This document shows, in pieces, positions 368-42,859 of a stretch of DNA of 64,000 nucleotides (positions within the stretch are counted from its first letter, which is position 1; each line of letters opens with the position of its first letter). A program made the translations under genes and the position numbers. Below the pieces are notes generated by a model, which ran no database searches, was not told the origin of the DNA, and saw nothing but the letters and a program-made list of their open reading frames with translations. The stretch lies in the NCBI GenBank assembly GCA_965153285.1, contig OZ229112.1; one strand, 5' to 3'. This stretch comes from Podarcis tiliguerta. Its lineage: Eukaryota.

Positions 368-495
368 CCCCTTCATGGATCACTGCCTTGCCGTGGCGAA
401 GGGGCTTGAAGAACTCAGAGAAGCTATGAACTATGCCGAGCAGGGCACCCAAGATGAACAGGTCATAGTGGAGAGTTTTGACCAAACGTGATCCA
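368..495 (+). ncRNA. Candidate HDV-like ribozyme fold at the Bov-B 5' terminus
   Basis: Hand pairing: P1 CCCCTTC 368-374/GAAGGGG 398-404; P2 TGGATCAC 376-383/GTGATCCA 488-495; P3 GCC 385-387/GGC 395-397 around a 7-nt loop TTGCCGT; P4 410-416/473-479 and 424-429/463-468. Activity is untested. Confidence 0.4.
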
Positions 496-3400
496 CCTGG
501 AGTAGGAATCGGCAAGCCACTCCAGTATCCCTGCCAAGAAAACTCCATGGACAAAGACAACAGGTATATAAAAGTTATGACGCTGGAAGATGAGCCCCTC
601 AGGTCGGAAGGCGTCCAACATGCTACTGGGGAAGAGCGGAGGACAAGTACAAGTAGATCCAGAGCTGATGAAGCGGCTGGGCCAAAGCCGAAAGGACGCT
701 CAGTTGCGGATATGCATGGAAGCGAAAGGAAAGTCCAATGCTGTAAAGAAAAATATTGCATAGGAACCTGGAATGTAAGAACCATGAACCTGGGTAAGTT
801 GGATGTGGTCAAAAATGAGATGGCAAGAATAAACATTGACATCCTGGGCATCAGTGAACTAAAATGGACGGGAATGGGCGAATTCAGTTCGGATGACTAT
901 CATATCTACTACTGTGGGCAAGAAACCCGTAAAAGAAATGGAGTGGCCCTCATAGTCAACAAAAGAGTGGCAAAAGCTGTACTGGGATGCAATCTCAAAA
1001 ATGATAGAATGATCTCGATACGAATCCAAGGCAGACCTTTTAACATCACAGTAATCCAAGTTTATGCACCAACTACTGGTGCTGAAGAAACTGAAATTGA
1101 CCAATTCTATGAAGACTTACAACAGCTTATAGAAGTGACACCAAAGAAGGATGTTCTTCTCATTATAGGGGATTGGAATGCTAAAGTAGGGAATCAAGAG
1201 ATAAAAGGAACAACTGGCAAATTTGGTCTTGGAATTCAAAATGAAGCAGGGCAAAGGCTAATAGAGTTCTGTCAAGAGAACAAGCTGGTCATCACAAACA
1301 CTCTTTTCCAACAACACAAGAGACGACTCTACACATGGACATCACCAGATGGGCAGCATCGAAATCAGATTGATTATATTCTCTGCAGCCAAAGATGGAG
1401 AAGCTCTATACAGTCAGCAAAAACAAGACCTGGAGCTGACTGTGGCTCAGATCATCAGCTTCTTATAGCAAAATTCAAGCTTAAACTGAAGAAAGTAGGA
1501 AAAACCACTGGGCCGGTAAGATACAATCTAAACCAAATCCCCTATGAATACACAGTGGAAGTGAGGAACAGGTTTAAGGATTTAGAATTGCTGGACAGAG
1601 TGCCTGAAGAACTATGGATGGAGGCTCGAAACATTATACAGGAGGCAGCAACGAAAACCATCCCAATGAAAAGGAAATGCAAGAAAGCAAAGTGGTTGTC
1701 CAATGAGGCCTTACAAATAGCGGAGGAGAGAAGGCAAGCAAAATGCGAGGGAGATAGAGAAAGATACAGGAAATTGAATGCAGAATTCCAAAAAATAGCA
1801 AGGAGAGACAAGAAGGCCTTCTTAAATGAGCAATGCAAAGAAATAGAGGAAAACAACAGAATGGGAAGAACCAGAGATCTGTTCAAGAAAATTGGAGATA
1901 TGAAAGGAACATTTCGTTCAAAGATTACCATAATAAAGGACAAAAGTGGTAAGGACCTAACAGAAGCAGAAGACATCAAGAAGAGGTGGCAAGAATACAC
2001 AGAGGAATTATACCAGAAAGATATGGATGTCTCGTACACCCCAGGTAGTGTGGTTGCTGACCTTGAGCCAGACATCCTGGAGAGTGAAGTCAAATGGGCC
2101 TTAGAAAGCATTGCAAATAACAAGGCCAGTGGAAGTGATGGCATTCCAGCTGAACTATTTAAAATTTTAAAAGATGATGCTGTTAAGGTGCTACACTCAA
2201 TATGCCAGCAAGTTTGGAAAACTCAGCAGTGGCCAGAAGATTGGAGAAGGTCAGTCTACATCCCAATCCCAAAGAAGGGCAGTGCTAAAGAATGCTCCAA
2301 CTACCGCACAATTGCACTCATTTCACACGCTAGCAAGGTTATGCTTAAAATTCTTCAAGGAAGGCTCAAGCAGTATGTGGACCGAGAACTCCCAGAAGTG
2401 CAAGCTGGATTTAGAAGAGGCAGGGGAACCAGAGACCAAATTGCAAACATGCGCTGGATTATGGAGAAAGCTAGAGAGTTCCAGAAAGACATCTACTTCT
2501 GCTTCATTGACTATGCAAAAGCCTTTGACTGTGTCGATCACAGCAAACTATGGCAAGTTCTTAAAGAAATGGGAGTGCCTGATCACCTCATCTGTCTCCT
2601 GAGAAATCTCTATGTGGGACAAGAAGCTACAGTTAGAACTGGATATGGAACAACTGATTGGTTCAAAATTGGGAAAGGAGTACGACAAGGCTGTATTTTG
2701 TCTCCCTGCTTATTTAACTTATATGCAGAATTCATCATGCGAAAGGCTGGGCTGGATGAATCCCTAGCCGGAATTAAGATTGCTGGAAGAAATATCAACA
2801 ACCTCAGATATGCAGATGACACAACCTTGATGGCAGAAAGTGAGGAGGAATTAAAAAACCTTTTATTGAGGGTGAAAGAGGAGAGCGCAAAATATGGTCT
2901 GAAGCTCAACATCAAAAAAACGAAGATCATGGCCACTGGTTCCATCACCTCCTGGCAAATAGAAGGGGAGGAAATGGAAGCAGTGAGAGATTTTACTTTC
3001 TTGGGTTCCATGATCACTGCAGATGGTGACAGCAGCCACGAAATTAAGAGACGCCTGCTTCTTGGGAGGAAAGCAATGGCAAACCTAGATAGCATTCTAA
3101 AAAGTAGAGACATCACCTTGCCAACAAAGGTCCGTATAGTAAAAGCTATGGTTTTCCCAGTTGTGATGTATGGAAGTGAGAGCTGGACCATAAAGAAGGC
3201 TGATCGCCGAAGAATTGACGCTTTTGAATTATGGTGCTGGAGGAGACTCTTGAGAGTCCCATGGACTGCAAGAAGATCAAACGCATCCATTCTTAAGGAA
3301 ATCAGCCCTGAGTGCTCACTGGAAGGACAGATCGTGAAGCTGAGGCTCCAATACTTTGGCCACCTCATGAGAAGAGAAGACTCACTGGAAAAGACCCTGA

Positions 3401-3579
3401 TGTTGGGAAAGATGGAGGGCACAAGGAGAAGGGGACGACAGAGGATGAGATGGTTAGACAGCGTTCTCGAAGCTACAAACATGAATCTGACCAAACTGCG
3501 GGTGGCAGTGGAAGACAGAAGTGCCTGGCGTGCTCTGGTCCATGGGGTCACGAAGAGTCGGACACGACTGAACGACTAA
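478..3579 (+). CDS. Bov-B ORF: AP-like endonuclease plus reverse transcriptase, 1033 aa open frame (first ATG at 547)
   Basis: APE motifs GTWNVRT, ILGISE, QVYAPT, IGDWNAK, QIDYIL, GSDHQLL; RT motifs QAGFR, FIDYAKAFD, GVRQGCILSP, RYADD; no stop or frameshift. Confidence 0.96.
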   Translation: MTKRDPPGVGIGKPLQYPCQENSMDKDNRYIKVMTLEDEPLRSEGVQHATGEERRTSTSRSRADEAAGPKPKGRSVADMHGSERKVQCCKEKYCIGTWNVRTMNLGKLDVVKNEMARINIDILGISELKWTGMGEFSSDDYHIYYCGQETRKRNGVALIVNKRVAKAVLGCNLKNDRMISIRIQGRPFNITVIQVYAPTTGAEETEIDQFYEDLQQLIEVTPKKDVLLIIGDWNAKVGNQEIKGTTGKFGLGIQNEAGQRLIEFCQENKLVITNTLFQQHKRRLYTWTSPDGQHRNQIDYILCSQRWRSSIQSAKTRPGADCGSDHQLLIAKFKLKLKKVGKTTGPVRYNLNQIPYEYTVEVRNRFKDLELLDRVPEELWMEARNIIQEAATKTIPMKRKCKKAKWLSNEALQIAEERRQAKCEGDRERYRKLNAEFQKIARRDKKAFLNEQCKEIEENNRMGRTRDLFKKIGDMKGTFRSKITIIKDKSGKDLTEAEDIKKRWQEYTEELYQKDMDVSYTPGSVVADLEPDILESEVKWALESIANNKASGSDGIPAELFKILKDDAVKVLHSICQQVWKTQQWPEDWRRSVYIPIPKKGSAKECSNYRTIALISHASKVMLKILQGRLKQYVDRELPEVQAGFRRGRGTRDQIANMRWIMEKAREFQKDIYFCFIDYAKAFDCVDHSKLWQVLKEMGVPDHLICLLRNLYVGQEATVRTGYGTTDWFKIGKGVRQGCILSPCLFNLYAEFIMRKAGLDESLAGIKIAGRNINNLRYADDTTLMAESEEELKNLLLRVKEESAKYGLKLNIKKTKIMATGSITSWQIEGEEMEAVRDFTFLGSMITADGDSSHEIKRRLLLGRKAMANLDSILKSRDITLPTKVRIVKAMVFPVVMYGSESWTIKKADRRRIDAFELWCWRRLLRVPWTARRSNASILKEISPECSLEGQIVKLRLQYFGHLMRREDSLEKTLMLGKMEGTRRRGRQRMRWLDSVLEATNMNLTKLRVAVEDRSAWRALVHGVTKSRTRLND

Positions 3580-3828
3580 ACAACAACAAAACTTGAAACC
3601 AGACTTGGATTAGAAAGCCCTTCAAAGATAGGATTCACCTTTGACAATATATCAAATAAAAAAATCTCTCTGCTCCATTATTACAGATAGGGTGTGGGGA
3701 ATCTGAATCAGTTTGCATTTAAAAATGAACCTGGCTAATTTTTACTTTCCAAAACAACACACAGCTAGCCTTCAAAATTTGCAGTTTTCCAGATTTTGCA
3801 ATGAAATTCTCCAGCCAATGAATGCATA

Positions 3829-40710: not shown

Positions 40711-42422
40711 CACTAAAGCAGCTTCTCTTGGTGAAGTGACCGCATCTGGATCCTGCACAGTAATTCAGTAAGTCGGCTCCCCCCTTTTTGGGTGTGGTGG
40801 CATTGCAGGATGGCGGAAGGCTCCTCCAAGGCCCCAGTGAGGGGGTAGCATCCACAGAGCCCCATAAACCCACACCACCTATCAGAGGCCGGATCCTAGC
40901 GTGCATCCCAGATTGTCAAATGGGGTTGCAGGCTAGGACCCGGGCTGGGACAGAGAGGGGAGGCTTCCCTTGGGTCCGCCCCATGGCCATTTAAGCAGCC
41001 CTCACCTGGGGCCCTACCTGCTTTTCCCTCCGTGCAAATGCACCACACTCCTTGCGCTGAAACCGTGTTGCCTGGAAAGGCCCGGGAATATCTTTTGGAA
41101 GGCCAGAAAAGGCAGCAAGATCTGCAGGGAACACATCTGAGGAGATTGGAATAGGGTTCTTGGATGTTCTTTTCTGAAGAGGATTGAAGGAGCGATATTA
41201 CCAGAGCAACCGGAGGCTCCTACAGGATGGGTTGCAGACTTGTTTTAAAGCGAGCCACATTGGCTAATTTATTAGCTGACATTTAACTGGAATTGATACC
41301 ACTGCCTTCGTGCATCTGGCTAATTCCAAGGGGTTCAAGAGTATCTCGGCAACAAACAACACATTATGCTCTTATGGACCCAGCCCAGTTTACAGTACAT
41401 TCCCAGGGCTGCTGCTGAACATTCCTTTGCTTTCCACTGAAACATGCTGCAGCCAGGTGAGTGTGTGGCTTGACTGGACTCGAAGGCACAAGGGAACATG
41501 GAGCATATTGAATTGTTCAGGGTTGCAGATATCTTGACAATAATCAGGAGCATTCATTTAAAACCAACCCAGCAGAAGGTCTGTGTGCTGGCAGGCCACA
41601 TTATCCCAGCTGACAGACGAGTTGTACTGGAGGAAGTGAAGCCTTTTTCAAAGTAAATGAAAAAACCAAAACAAAACAGCAGCCCAGCAGGGTTTTGCTA
41701 TTTCAAAAGGGTGCTTGAACTGGAATTAGAACTGCAGACAGCCATTCTCTGTTCAAGGCAAAGGGCAATTATAGGCTGGCATTGTAGCTAGTGTGCTGGC
41801 TTAGGTTCAGATCTGTGGTGTATCTGACAGTATGCTACCCTAGCGCATGCCAAAAAACCAGGGGGACAGAACTGAGAACAGCAGGAAGGAAGTGAAAACA
41901 GCCAGGGGCAGCAATGGGCAGAGTGACTTGTTAGGATATTGATGTTCCGTTCCACCTTAACAGACGTGTGGAATTGTTGTATGTCACATGTCTGTTTACA
42001 CTCCAGCACAGCCTGCTGGGAACTTCCATTTGTGTGTATAGCTATTGCTTATGCTGCTTGCTTGGACATGAAAGGGAGAAGACATGTTTTTCCTTTTGTC
42101 CTGATGTATGCTGAATAAAATGCTTGTAAATATGCTTTACACAGCCTCTCCCTGCCACTTCTGTTGTGCGTTTACTCTGCTGAGTTGCATGCCCAGCTTC
42201 TGAGGCTTCTGGAGCTCTGGGTTGCAGATTCATGCTGCACCAAGGACTGGAGTTTGACCAGCACATCGGCTGGTGGGCTGGAGCCAGCTGGGGGCTTGCC
42301 AATTGCCCCCGATTCCTTAGCAGCATCCAAGCATGACTAACCCTTTGCTTTGAAGTCCATACATTCAGATGTCTCTTGTAGGCCAGATTTAGGGAGTTTT
42401 AATGTGCAAATGTTTCAATGTG

Positions 42423-42613
42423 CTGATGTTGGGAAAGATTGAGGGCACAAGGAGAAGGGGACGACAGAGGATGAGATGGTTGGACAGTGTTCTCGGAGCT
42501 ACCAACATGAGTTTGACCAAACTGCGGGAGGCAGTGGAAGATAGGAGTGCCTGGCGTGCTCTGGTCCATGGGGTCACGAAGAGTCGGACACAACTAAACG
42601 ACTAAACAACAAA
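42423..42613 (+). mobile_element. 5'-truncated Bov-B, last ~190 bp
   Basis: Closely matches 3397-3589; 12-bp TSD AATGTGCAAATG (42401-42412, 42614-42625). Confidence 0.95.
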
Positions 42614-42859
42614 AATGTGCAAATGGACTTAGGTCTTGCAAGGAACCAGCAGCTCAGGATTAGCAAGGTTTATTGCTGTGCCATCTTCCAAAGAGTGATT
42701 TAGCAAATTCAGCTCTTAGGAACACCCTACCTTATGTTGCCATCGTTTTAAAATCTCCAAGAAGATGGCATTGACACGAGGTGGGAGGTTAGATGTCAAA
42801 ATGGGAAGCTTTGTCGTAATATGTGATGCATTCCTTTCAGTGTGAGAGAGCTGGGAGAG

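Follow-up and report, generated by a model that had tools for sequence, protein, structure and literature searches.

The 5' end of a squamate Bov-B family is probably set by a functional HDV-like ribozyme, which sequence comparison suggests was inherited from an RTE lineage shared with rotifers and was lost in ruminants. The copy on which this proposal is based lies in a stretch of 64,000 nucleotides from Podarcis tiliguerta (GCA_965153285.1, contig OZ229112.1; hereafter, the window). Bov-B is a textbook case of horizontal transfer among vertebrate retrotransposons, and the proposal bears on how its RNA gains a defined 5' end and expression in a new host. If the proposal is true, a copy in any transcribed region would yield a correct full-length template without a promoter of its own. 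It would also be an apparently undescribed HDV-like case in a vertebrate (lizard) LINE, with copies that look active, and ruminant Bov-B, with its core deleted and a long new 5' UTR, would be a natural experiment on a switch of expression strategy.

The Bov-B element and its 5' end

The window contains an intact full-length Bov-B/RTE element on the + strand, placed at 368-3589 because copies of a target-site duplication lie on both sides of it:

357-367, + strand: 5' target-site duplication (aacttgaaacc), identical to the 11-mer at 3590-3600
368-3589, + strand: Bov-B/RTE element, with the frame open from 478 to 3579 (ORF list and translation) and the first AUG at 547
3590-3600, + strand: 3' target-site duplication (11 bp, aacttgaaacc), the same as 357-367

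The 3' end of the element carries a ACAACAACAA tail. Its ORF product has 97% amino acid identity to a Podarcis muralis protein, and homologues of this protein bear endonuclease (AP) and reverse-transcriptase domains (Pfam). Just one Bov-B 5' end is present within the window. A second Bov-B piece, at approximately 42413-42614, is a 5'-truncated 3' fragment, 93% identical to 3397-3589, which sits between copies of its own duplication, aatgtgcaaatg.

An earlier note on this DNA, made from the letters of the window, had claimed that the first helix of an HDV-like fold (P1) begins exactly at the 5' end of Bov-B, with an ambiguity of about 2 nt left by a run of C. The ambiguity is agreed, and the element boundary 368-3589 holds with that margin. 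The position of the end is supported by the target-site duplication and by DNA contigs of two related species, mapped onto 250-760, in which contig depth rises sharply at 367-370. Where the upstream flanks differ (low-agreement consensus), contigs end at 368 (60 in X1), 367 (26) and 370 (34), so that approximately 120 such contigs in one species, as well as a smaller set in the second, place the 5' end at the start of P1. The ratio of stops at 367 to stops at 368 is about that expected for a chance match of one flank base. With 368 as the commonest stop of the flank-differing contigs, the modal 5' end of the family coincides with the first base of P1.

Predicted fold of positions 368-495

The elements of the fold, all on the + strand, are as follows:

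368-374, + strand: P1 5' strand (CCCCTTC), pairing with 398-404; predicted cleavage site immediately 5' of C368
376-383, + strand: P2 5' strand (TGGATCAC), 8 bp with 488-495, duplex -11 kcal/mol
385-387/395-397, + strand: P3 (GCC/GGC) enclosing L3 (TTGCCGT, 388-394), from direct reading and the Rfam alignment
390 and 405, + strand: candidate single-pair P1.1 (G390-C405), the only possible pair
398-404, + strand: P1 3' strand (GAAGGGG), adjoining P3 without a spacer (J3/1 = 0)
405-479, + strand: J1/4 and large P4 domain, with outer helix 410-416/473-479 and inner helix 431-435/464-468 in the constrained fold
480-487, + strand: J4/2 (GACCAAAC), with C482 (or C483) as candidate catalytic cytosine
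488-495, + strand: P2 3' strand (GTGATCCA), pairing with 376-383

The strand order P1-P2-P3-L3-P3'-P1'-P4-J4/2-P2', which the earlier note had recognised as that of HDV-type ribozymes, follows from coordinates read directly and was found by a descriptor scan. Direct reading likewise confirmed its 7-bp P1, its 8-bp crossing P2 helix, its GCC-(TTGCCGT)-GGC hairpin adjoining the P1 3' strand and its linker ahead of the P2 3' strand. The nested P4-like helices that it described were recovered in a fold constrained for P1 and P3, at 410-416/473-479 and about 423-429/463-469.

P1 has its 3' strand directly after P3/L3, and the predicted cut at its first nucleotide coincides with the 5' end of the element. 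A375 forms J1/2, which is 1-2 nt in the lizard, and T384 is unpaired; Agam-2-1 constructs with a 1-nt spacer had little activity (PMC4908430). P3 of 3 bp with a 7-nt L3 carrying the U...C-G core nucleotides, a mark of the class, is found in the lizard copy, where U388, C392 and G393 occupy sites conserved in HDV-like cores; the C and G of L3 are conserved sites in R2 ribozymes (PMC3774820). J4/2 has counterparts before P2' in two other RTE families, described below (L041 has GACGAAAC, the rotifer family GGCCAA). In the lizard it is 6 nt compared with 4, and its distance to P2' exceeds that of HDV by 1-2 nt and equals that of L041. At the positions equivalent to P1.1 (the third nucleotide of L3 and the first nucleotide past P1'), the rotifer family has U-A.

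By the energy estimates, the HDV-type fold is competitive with the best nested fold (-30.8 for the nested part and -11 for P2, versus -39 kcal/mol). The nested minimum-energy fold lacks P1 and P3 and the z-score is just -1.6; therefore, thermodynamics alone does not single out the HDV-type fold. An 8-bp helix at 384-391/440-447 (UGCCUUGC/GCAGGGCA), used by the nested minimum-energy fold, competes with P3/L3 and could represent an inactive alternative conformer. The rotifer family suggested a compact P2' near 453-459, which was rejected, as only 4-5 bp are possible there and they overlap with P1.

Chance expectation and similarity to Rfam families

The HDV topology by itself is weak evidence. 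A loose descriptor (7-bp P1; a 3-bp P3 that closes a 7-nt loop and lies no more than 2 nt from P1'; and, crossing downstream, a P2 of 6 bp or more) found 22 sites on one strand of the window and 24 on the other, versus 17 per strand in first-order Markov simulations of 64 kb. After the addition of core signatures of HDV-type ribozymes (U at position 1 and G at position 6 of L3; C-N-A-A within 2 nt of P2'), site 368 was the only one found, against 0.06 expected per 64-kb strand, and with a P2 of at least 8 bp the full descriptor had hits in 0/100 simulations. The descriptor was partly tuned after the sequences had been seen; therefore, these chance figures are supportive and do not constitute a formal test.

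RF02682 is the sole one of 4227 Rfam families matching 355-510 (14.9 bits, E = 1). Its model position 1 falls on 368, P1, P3 and L3 are in the same register, and the lizard L3 UUGCCGU aligns to the model consensus UCUaCGU; taken singly, this match is not significant. No Rfam family reached its gathering threshold (44 for RF02682) anywhere in the window, the other HDV-type models (RF00094 and RF00622, CPEB3 included) had no match to the lizard site at E<=10, and a 6-kb Rfam E-value scan gave no HDV match. Kinship with the mammalian CPEB3 ribozyme, considered for its similar L3, was rejected, as the CPEB3 model had no match at E<=10 in the lizard or the rotifer family. When a covariance model was trained on the rotifer 5' domains alone, four near-identical copies, site 368 was not among its matches in the window at E<=10; the model is too sequence-specific to be informative on this site.

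The E of 1 for the lizard and the partly after-the-fact descriptor are what a chance resemblance in a single copy has in its favor. This explanation is hardly credible, given that the window copy has the dominant family letters across the core in two species, that P2 covaries with ruminant copies and that the architecture is common to three lineages, as presented below. It is also quite improbable that position 368 is set by the start of an internal promoter, with an ordinary structured leader that merely resembles the HDV topology. The frequency of the loose topology by chance would suit such a leader, and in L1Tc the ribozyme cleavage site coincides with the promoter start, which makes the two hard to separate (PMC3185411). 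The restriction of the full descriptor to site 368 argues against it, as do two results of the comparison with other RTE families, namely, the same layout in different letters at the first base of two of them and the E-value of 5.5e-4 for RF02682 in the rotifer family.

Conservation among lizard copies and RNA-seq

Across 368-410 and 480-495, the window copy has the dominant family letters in the DNA contigs of the two related species. Among the variants listed for these two stretches, only C397T was found in DNA contigs (1-5%), and it retains a G.U pair. The interior of P4 varies among copies, with several variants at 30-80% in the DNA contigs; this contrast between the core and P4, drawn among the best-supported variants listed, is indicative and not complete.

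These data bear on a further explanation, namely, that the leader is ribozyme-derived and non-catalytic and is kept for 5' protection, recruitment of the element protein, or cap-independent or non-AUG translation, which is considered unlikely. The departures of the lizard core from the canon (a P1.1 of at best one pair, a longer J4/2 and an Rfam score of 14.9 bits) would agree with a loss of catalysis, although active ribozymes with the same deviations exist (PMC3185411). Against it, the core (the U, C and G of L3 and the candidate C-N-A-A) is intact, with none of the variants listed above approximately 5% in the DNA contigs.

RNA was represented by two 2026 RNA-seq runs of a related species, with reads over the 368 region and the junction not strand-resolved. 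No pile-up of molecule ends at 368 was found in either run; the lack of such a pile-up is in keeping with a non-catalytic leader. Reads that continue upstream of 368 into a single consensus flank number 59 in one run and 97 in the other. Their number matches that of the reads with T389G, a variant present in a single DNA contig, and T389G reads occur only where the first mate is on the + strand; in the other read orientation, depth near 368 is only 5-40. The crossing reads therefore point to one locus and, with the usual stranded protocol, to the antisense orientation, and they are probably antisense RNA mainly from one locus. With regard to cleavage, the RNA-seq is uninformative, neither for nor against. 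Most of the first-mate-minus reads over 498-720 in X23 and X24 come from one diverged 5'-truncated Bov-B copy with loose ends at 498/512 and 721 and approximately 30 linked variants, which is evidently embedded in a well-expressed host transcript.

Bov-B copies of ruminants

The ruminant (bovine-type) Bov-B copies (L001-L006, L016 and L039) have 76-78% amino acid identity to the lizard and are homologous to it from approximately 405 onward. They are without an 18-nt segment corresponding to 391-408, which includes the 3' part of L3, P3' and P1' (the gap edges are ambiguous by a few bases), and extend at least 250 nt further upstream in a repeat-rich leader. In L001-L003 and L039, GC-rich repeated units (GAGATACCCC.CG.CCAAGGTAAG...) take up at least 250 nt of this leader upstream of the equivalent of window position 376; these units are absent from the lizard element, and the ORF frame is open through much of the ruminant leader. 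The HDV descriptor had no match in the ruminant copies.

P2 is kept in ruminants (GGACCAC/GTGGTCC), with the lizard T380-A491 pair being C-G there. The inner P4 helix is kept as well and differs from that of the lizard by a single compensatory change, U-A to C-G; in the outer P4 helix, pairing is down to 65%. As P2 and the inner P4 are kept without P1' and P3', these helices may serve another purpose; they are either older than the deletion or have a second function. Their retention with compensatory changes, in the absence of P1' and P3', is a point in favor of the non-catalytic leader.

The earlier note had proposed the ribozyme as a trait of Bov-B and had held that full-length copies routinely running well upstream of P1 would speak against it. 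Such copies are present in ruminants (by at least 250 nt) and not in the lizard family. The proposal stands for the lizard family and its RTE relatives and fails for ruminants, which have neither P3' nor P1'. Because ruminants are without these strands and have a longer 5' UTR, the putative ribozyme is to be taken as a trait of this squamate lineage and RTE relatives, and not of all Bov-B.

Rotifer and distant RTE families

Comparators were obtained through contig scans with the Bov-B N-terminal protein and cover ruminant Bov-B, a rotifer RTE family and a more distant RTE family. The scan of viral contigs found nothing, and the matches in genome contigs were mostly bovine contamination. The rotifer RTE family has four copies (L008, L009, L012 and L015) and 60% amino acid identity to the lizard ORF; L008 shares 91% identity with a Rotaria socialis protein. 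All four can be aligned as far as CTCTCATGAAG, and their sequences part exactly upstream of CTCTCAT. From this first shared base, P1 (CTCTCAT/ATGAGAG) can be formed, with P1' following without a spacer. J1/2 is 9 nt, P2 (ACGTGCA/TGCGCGT) stacks directly on P3 (ACC/GGT), L3 is TCTACGT (TTTACGT and TCTGCGT in other copies), P4 is a 9-bp hairpin, and J4/2 is GCCAA (GCTAA in L012). RF02682 aligns with the rotifer copies end to end from the first base, with 29.3 bits (E 5.5e-4, 181-nt search), 32.3 bits and 26.3 bits, all of them below the gathering score of 44 and with P2 not scored by the model. L009 has a G-to-A change at the conserved G of L3, which suggests that it is probably a dead copy.

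The J1/2 segment AGTCGGA of the rotifer family can also pair with a distal TCGGACT (e.g., L015:101-107 with 216-222), and the position of this distal strand is homologous to that of the lizard P2'. The distal strand may have taken the place of a proximal P2' in the lizard lineage. In L008, several microRNA-precursor models match a near-perfect palindrome at 440-531 on both strands, with 36-50 bits; the palindrome belongs to the upstream flank of the rotifer element, to which it has no relation.

A distant RTE family (L036 and L041), with 42-44% identity, comes from a contaminated MAG. The two copies part just upstream of CTTCCTC, and from this first shared base they have P1 (CTTCCTC/GAGGAGG), as well as P2 (GTGCTGG/CCAGCAC) with its partner strand approximately 100 nt downstream. 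L041 has the above-mentioned J4/2 at the lizard spacing and L036 has GATGAAAC; the assignment of P3/L3 in this family is uncertain. L011 has a related GAAGTCGGAGTGTACACC motif and was left out of the comparison, being without a clean fold or a defined 5' end.

On 85 kb of comparator loci, the loose descriptor matched the first base in every family with a definable 5' end and only a few other sites, none of them in ruminant loci. Across the three lineages compared, whose 5' halves are not alignable by sequence, P1 is paired in 21/21 cells with 6/7 positions changed on both sides, and the first P1 pair, C-G, is common to the lizard, the rotifer family and L036/L041. A P3 pair goes from G-C to A-U to U.G, and the P2 strands are unrelated in sequence and still complementary. 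The HDV-like reading of the fold in the earlier note is thereby strengthened, with three RTE lineages sharing an architecture with compensatory changes and RF02682 aligning in register. Under a non-catalytic leader, it would be left unexplained why P1 sits at the very first base in all three.

Proposed mechanism and the leader before the first AUG

In the preferred reading, in which a functional ribozyme sets the 5' end, Bov-B would be transcribed inside a longer host or read-through RNA, where P1, P3/L3, P2 and the large P4 domain would fold. The J4/2 cytosine (C482 or C483), together with the L3 core, would then catalyse scission immediately 5' of C368, and the product RNA would begin at the first base of the element, with a 5'-OH and a compact protective fold. 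Because the element RNA would start at its first base, it is proposed that every full-length cDNA copy would carry the ribozyme. What the sequences show is the fold, its place at the 5' end of the family, its retention through compensatory changes among related RTE families and its loss from ruminant Bov-B. Catalysis, the identity of the catalytic cytosine and any role in translation or horizontal transfer are inferred; the link to the frequent horizontal transfer of Bov-B is speculation.

Downstream of P2', the leader includes the following:

497-546, + strand: rest of the 5' leader, with a hairpin at 497-503/519-525 and an in-frame conserved peptide-coding stretch before the first AUG
478-546, + strand: peptide-coding stretch, frame open, as in L015:195-276, L001:316-390 and L011:540-590

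The peptide G.G.GKPLQY..QEN.M, encoded upstream of the first AUG, is conserved in the lizard, ruminants, the rotifer family and L011, and many of the differences in its codons are synonymous (GGC/GGT, AAG/AAA, CTC/CTT and AAC/AAT). No in-frame upstream AUG is present in the lizard or the rotifer family; cattle have one at the P2' position. A conserved upstream peptide without an AUG indicates that translation may begin before AUG547 at a non-AUG codon, and the conservation of this stretch across lineages also counts in favor of a leader kept for reasons other than cleavage. The hairpin just past P2' (CTGGAGT/ACTCCAG) has one pair that covaries, being G-C in the lizard, G.U in cattle (CTGGAG/CTTCAG) and A-U in the rotifer family (CTGAAG/CTTCAG); in most of the family, a C at 503 cuts the hairpin to 6 bp.

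A broader version of the ribozyme hypothesis, possible and rather doubtful, makes the ribozyme ancestral to the whole Bov-B/RTE lineage, rotifers and squamates included, with promoter-free release and non-AUG translation, and has ruminants switching their expression strategy. In this version, the ribozyme would spare the need for a promoter and launch cap-independent non-AUG translation of the upstream peptide. After horizontal transfer, ruminants would have deleted P3' and P1' and gained the repeat-rich, promoter-type 5' UTR and the upstream AUG.

Comparison with known systems

Ruminski, Webb, Riccitelli and Luptak reportedly described in 2011 ribozyme-terminated RTE examples in arthropods, nematodes and chordates. 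The full-text literature search, whose scope did not take in the contents of that paper, found no paper joining Bov-B, BovB or RTE-BovB with an HDV-like ribozyme, in agreement with the earlier note. RTE elements were already known to carry HDV-like ribozymes at their 5' ends, and the Bov-B case is apparently undescribed.

The published rules of the HDV class fit the lizard fold. They include a cut at the first nucleotide of P1 and a P1 of 6-7 bp directly after P3/L3, a P2 of approximately 7 bp, a highly variable P4, and few invariant sites beyond the catalytic C and some of L3 (PMC3774820, PMC4908430). As in the lizard, the R2 ribozymes have a P1 of 6-7 bp right after P3/L3, with a P2 of at least 5 bp and a highly variable P4; apart from L3 nucleotides and the catalytic C, few of their positions are invariant, and extensive compensatory change in P1 is found between lineages (PMC3774820). 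R2 differs in being site-specific in 28S rDNA, where its ribozyme often cleaves upstream within the rRNA (PMC3774820), whereas Bov-B inserts at dispersed sites and its predicted cut is at the junction.

Of the Rfam models, RF02682 (the F. prausnitzii HDV ribozyme) alone aligns, and its consensus agrees with the rotifer L3 UCUACGU letter for letter. It is a bacterial family, against which the scores of the lizard (14.9 bits) and the rotifer family (26-32 bits) remain below the gathering value of 44, and the similarity is one of the common class core, not of family membership.

L1TcRz, formed by the first 77 nt of the T. cruzi L1Tc element, is an HDV-like ribozyme that cleaves before C1, has a single-pair P1.1 and leaves a 5'-OH product (PMC3185411). 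It shares with the lizard fold the C at +1 and the 3-bp P3, its single-pair P1.1 parallels the candidate G390-C405, and its host LINE is also non-site-specific. It differs in belonging to an L1-like clade (not RTE), in its compact fold and in having its cleavage shown, whereas the Bov-B fold is predicted from sequence. The earlier note had listed the C at +1 and the one-pair P1.1 as caveats. The experimentally active L1TcRz has both and is a precedent that answers these two main caveats.

The closest systems are those of the RTE clade itself, for which passages of two papers report HDV-like ribozymes that cut precisely at the 5' junction; the same is reported for R2, R4, L1Tc and baggins (PMC3774820, PMC6765202). 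Like lizard Bov-B, these RTE elements have the cleavage site at their first base, and the function described in those passages, release from co-transcripts of elements said to be promoterless, is the role proposed here. The lizard fold differs in that P2' follows P1' at a distance of 84 nt, after a P4 domain of 75 nt. The lizard element combines an RTE-type ORF with a ribozyme-like fold at its 5' terminus, in an architecture that is kept in the rotifer family and in L036/L041.
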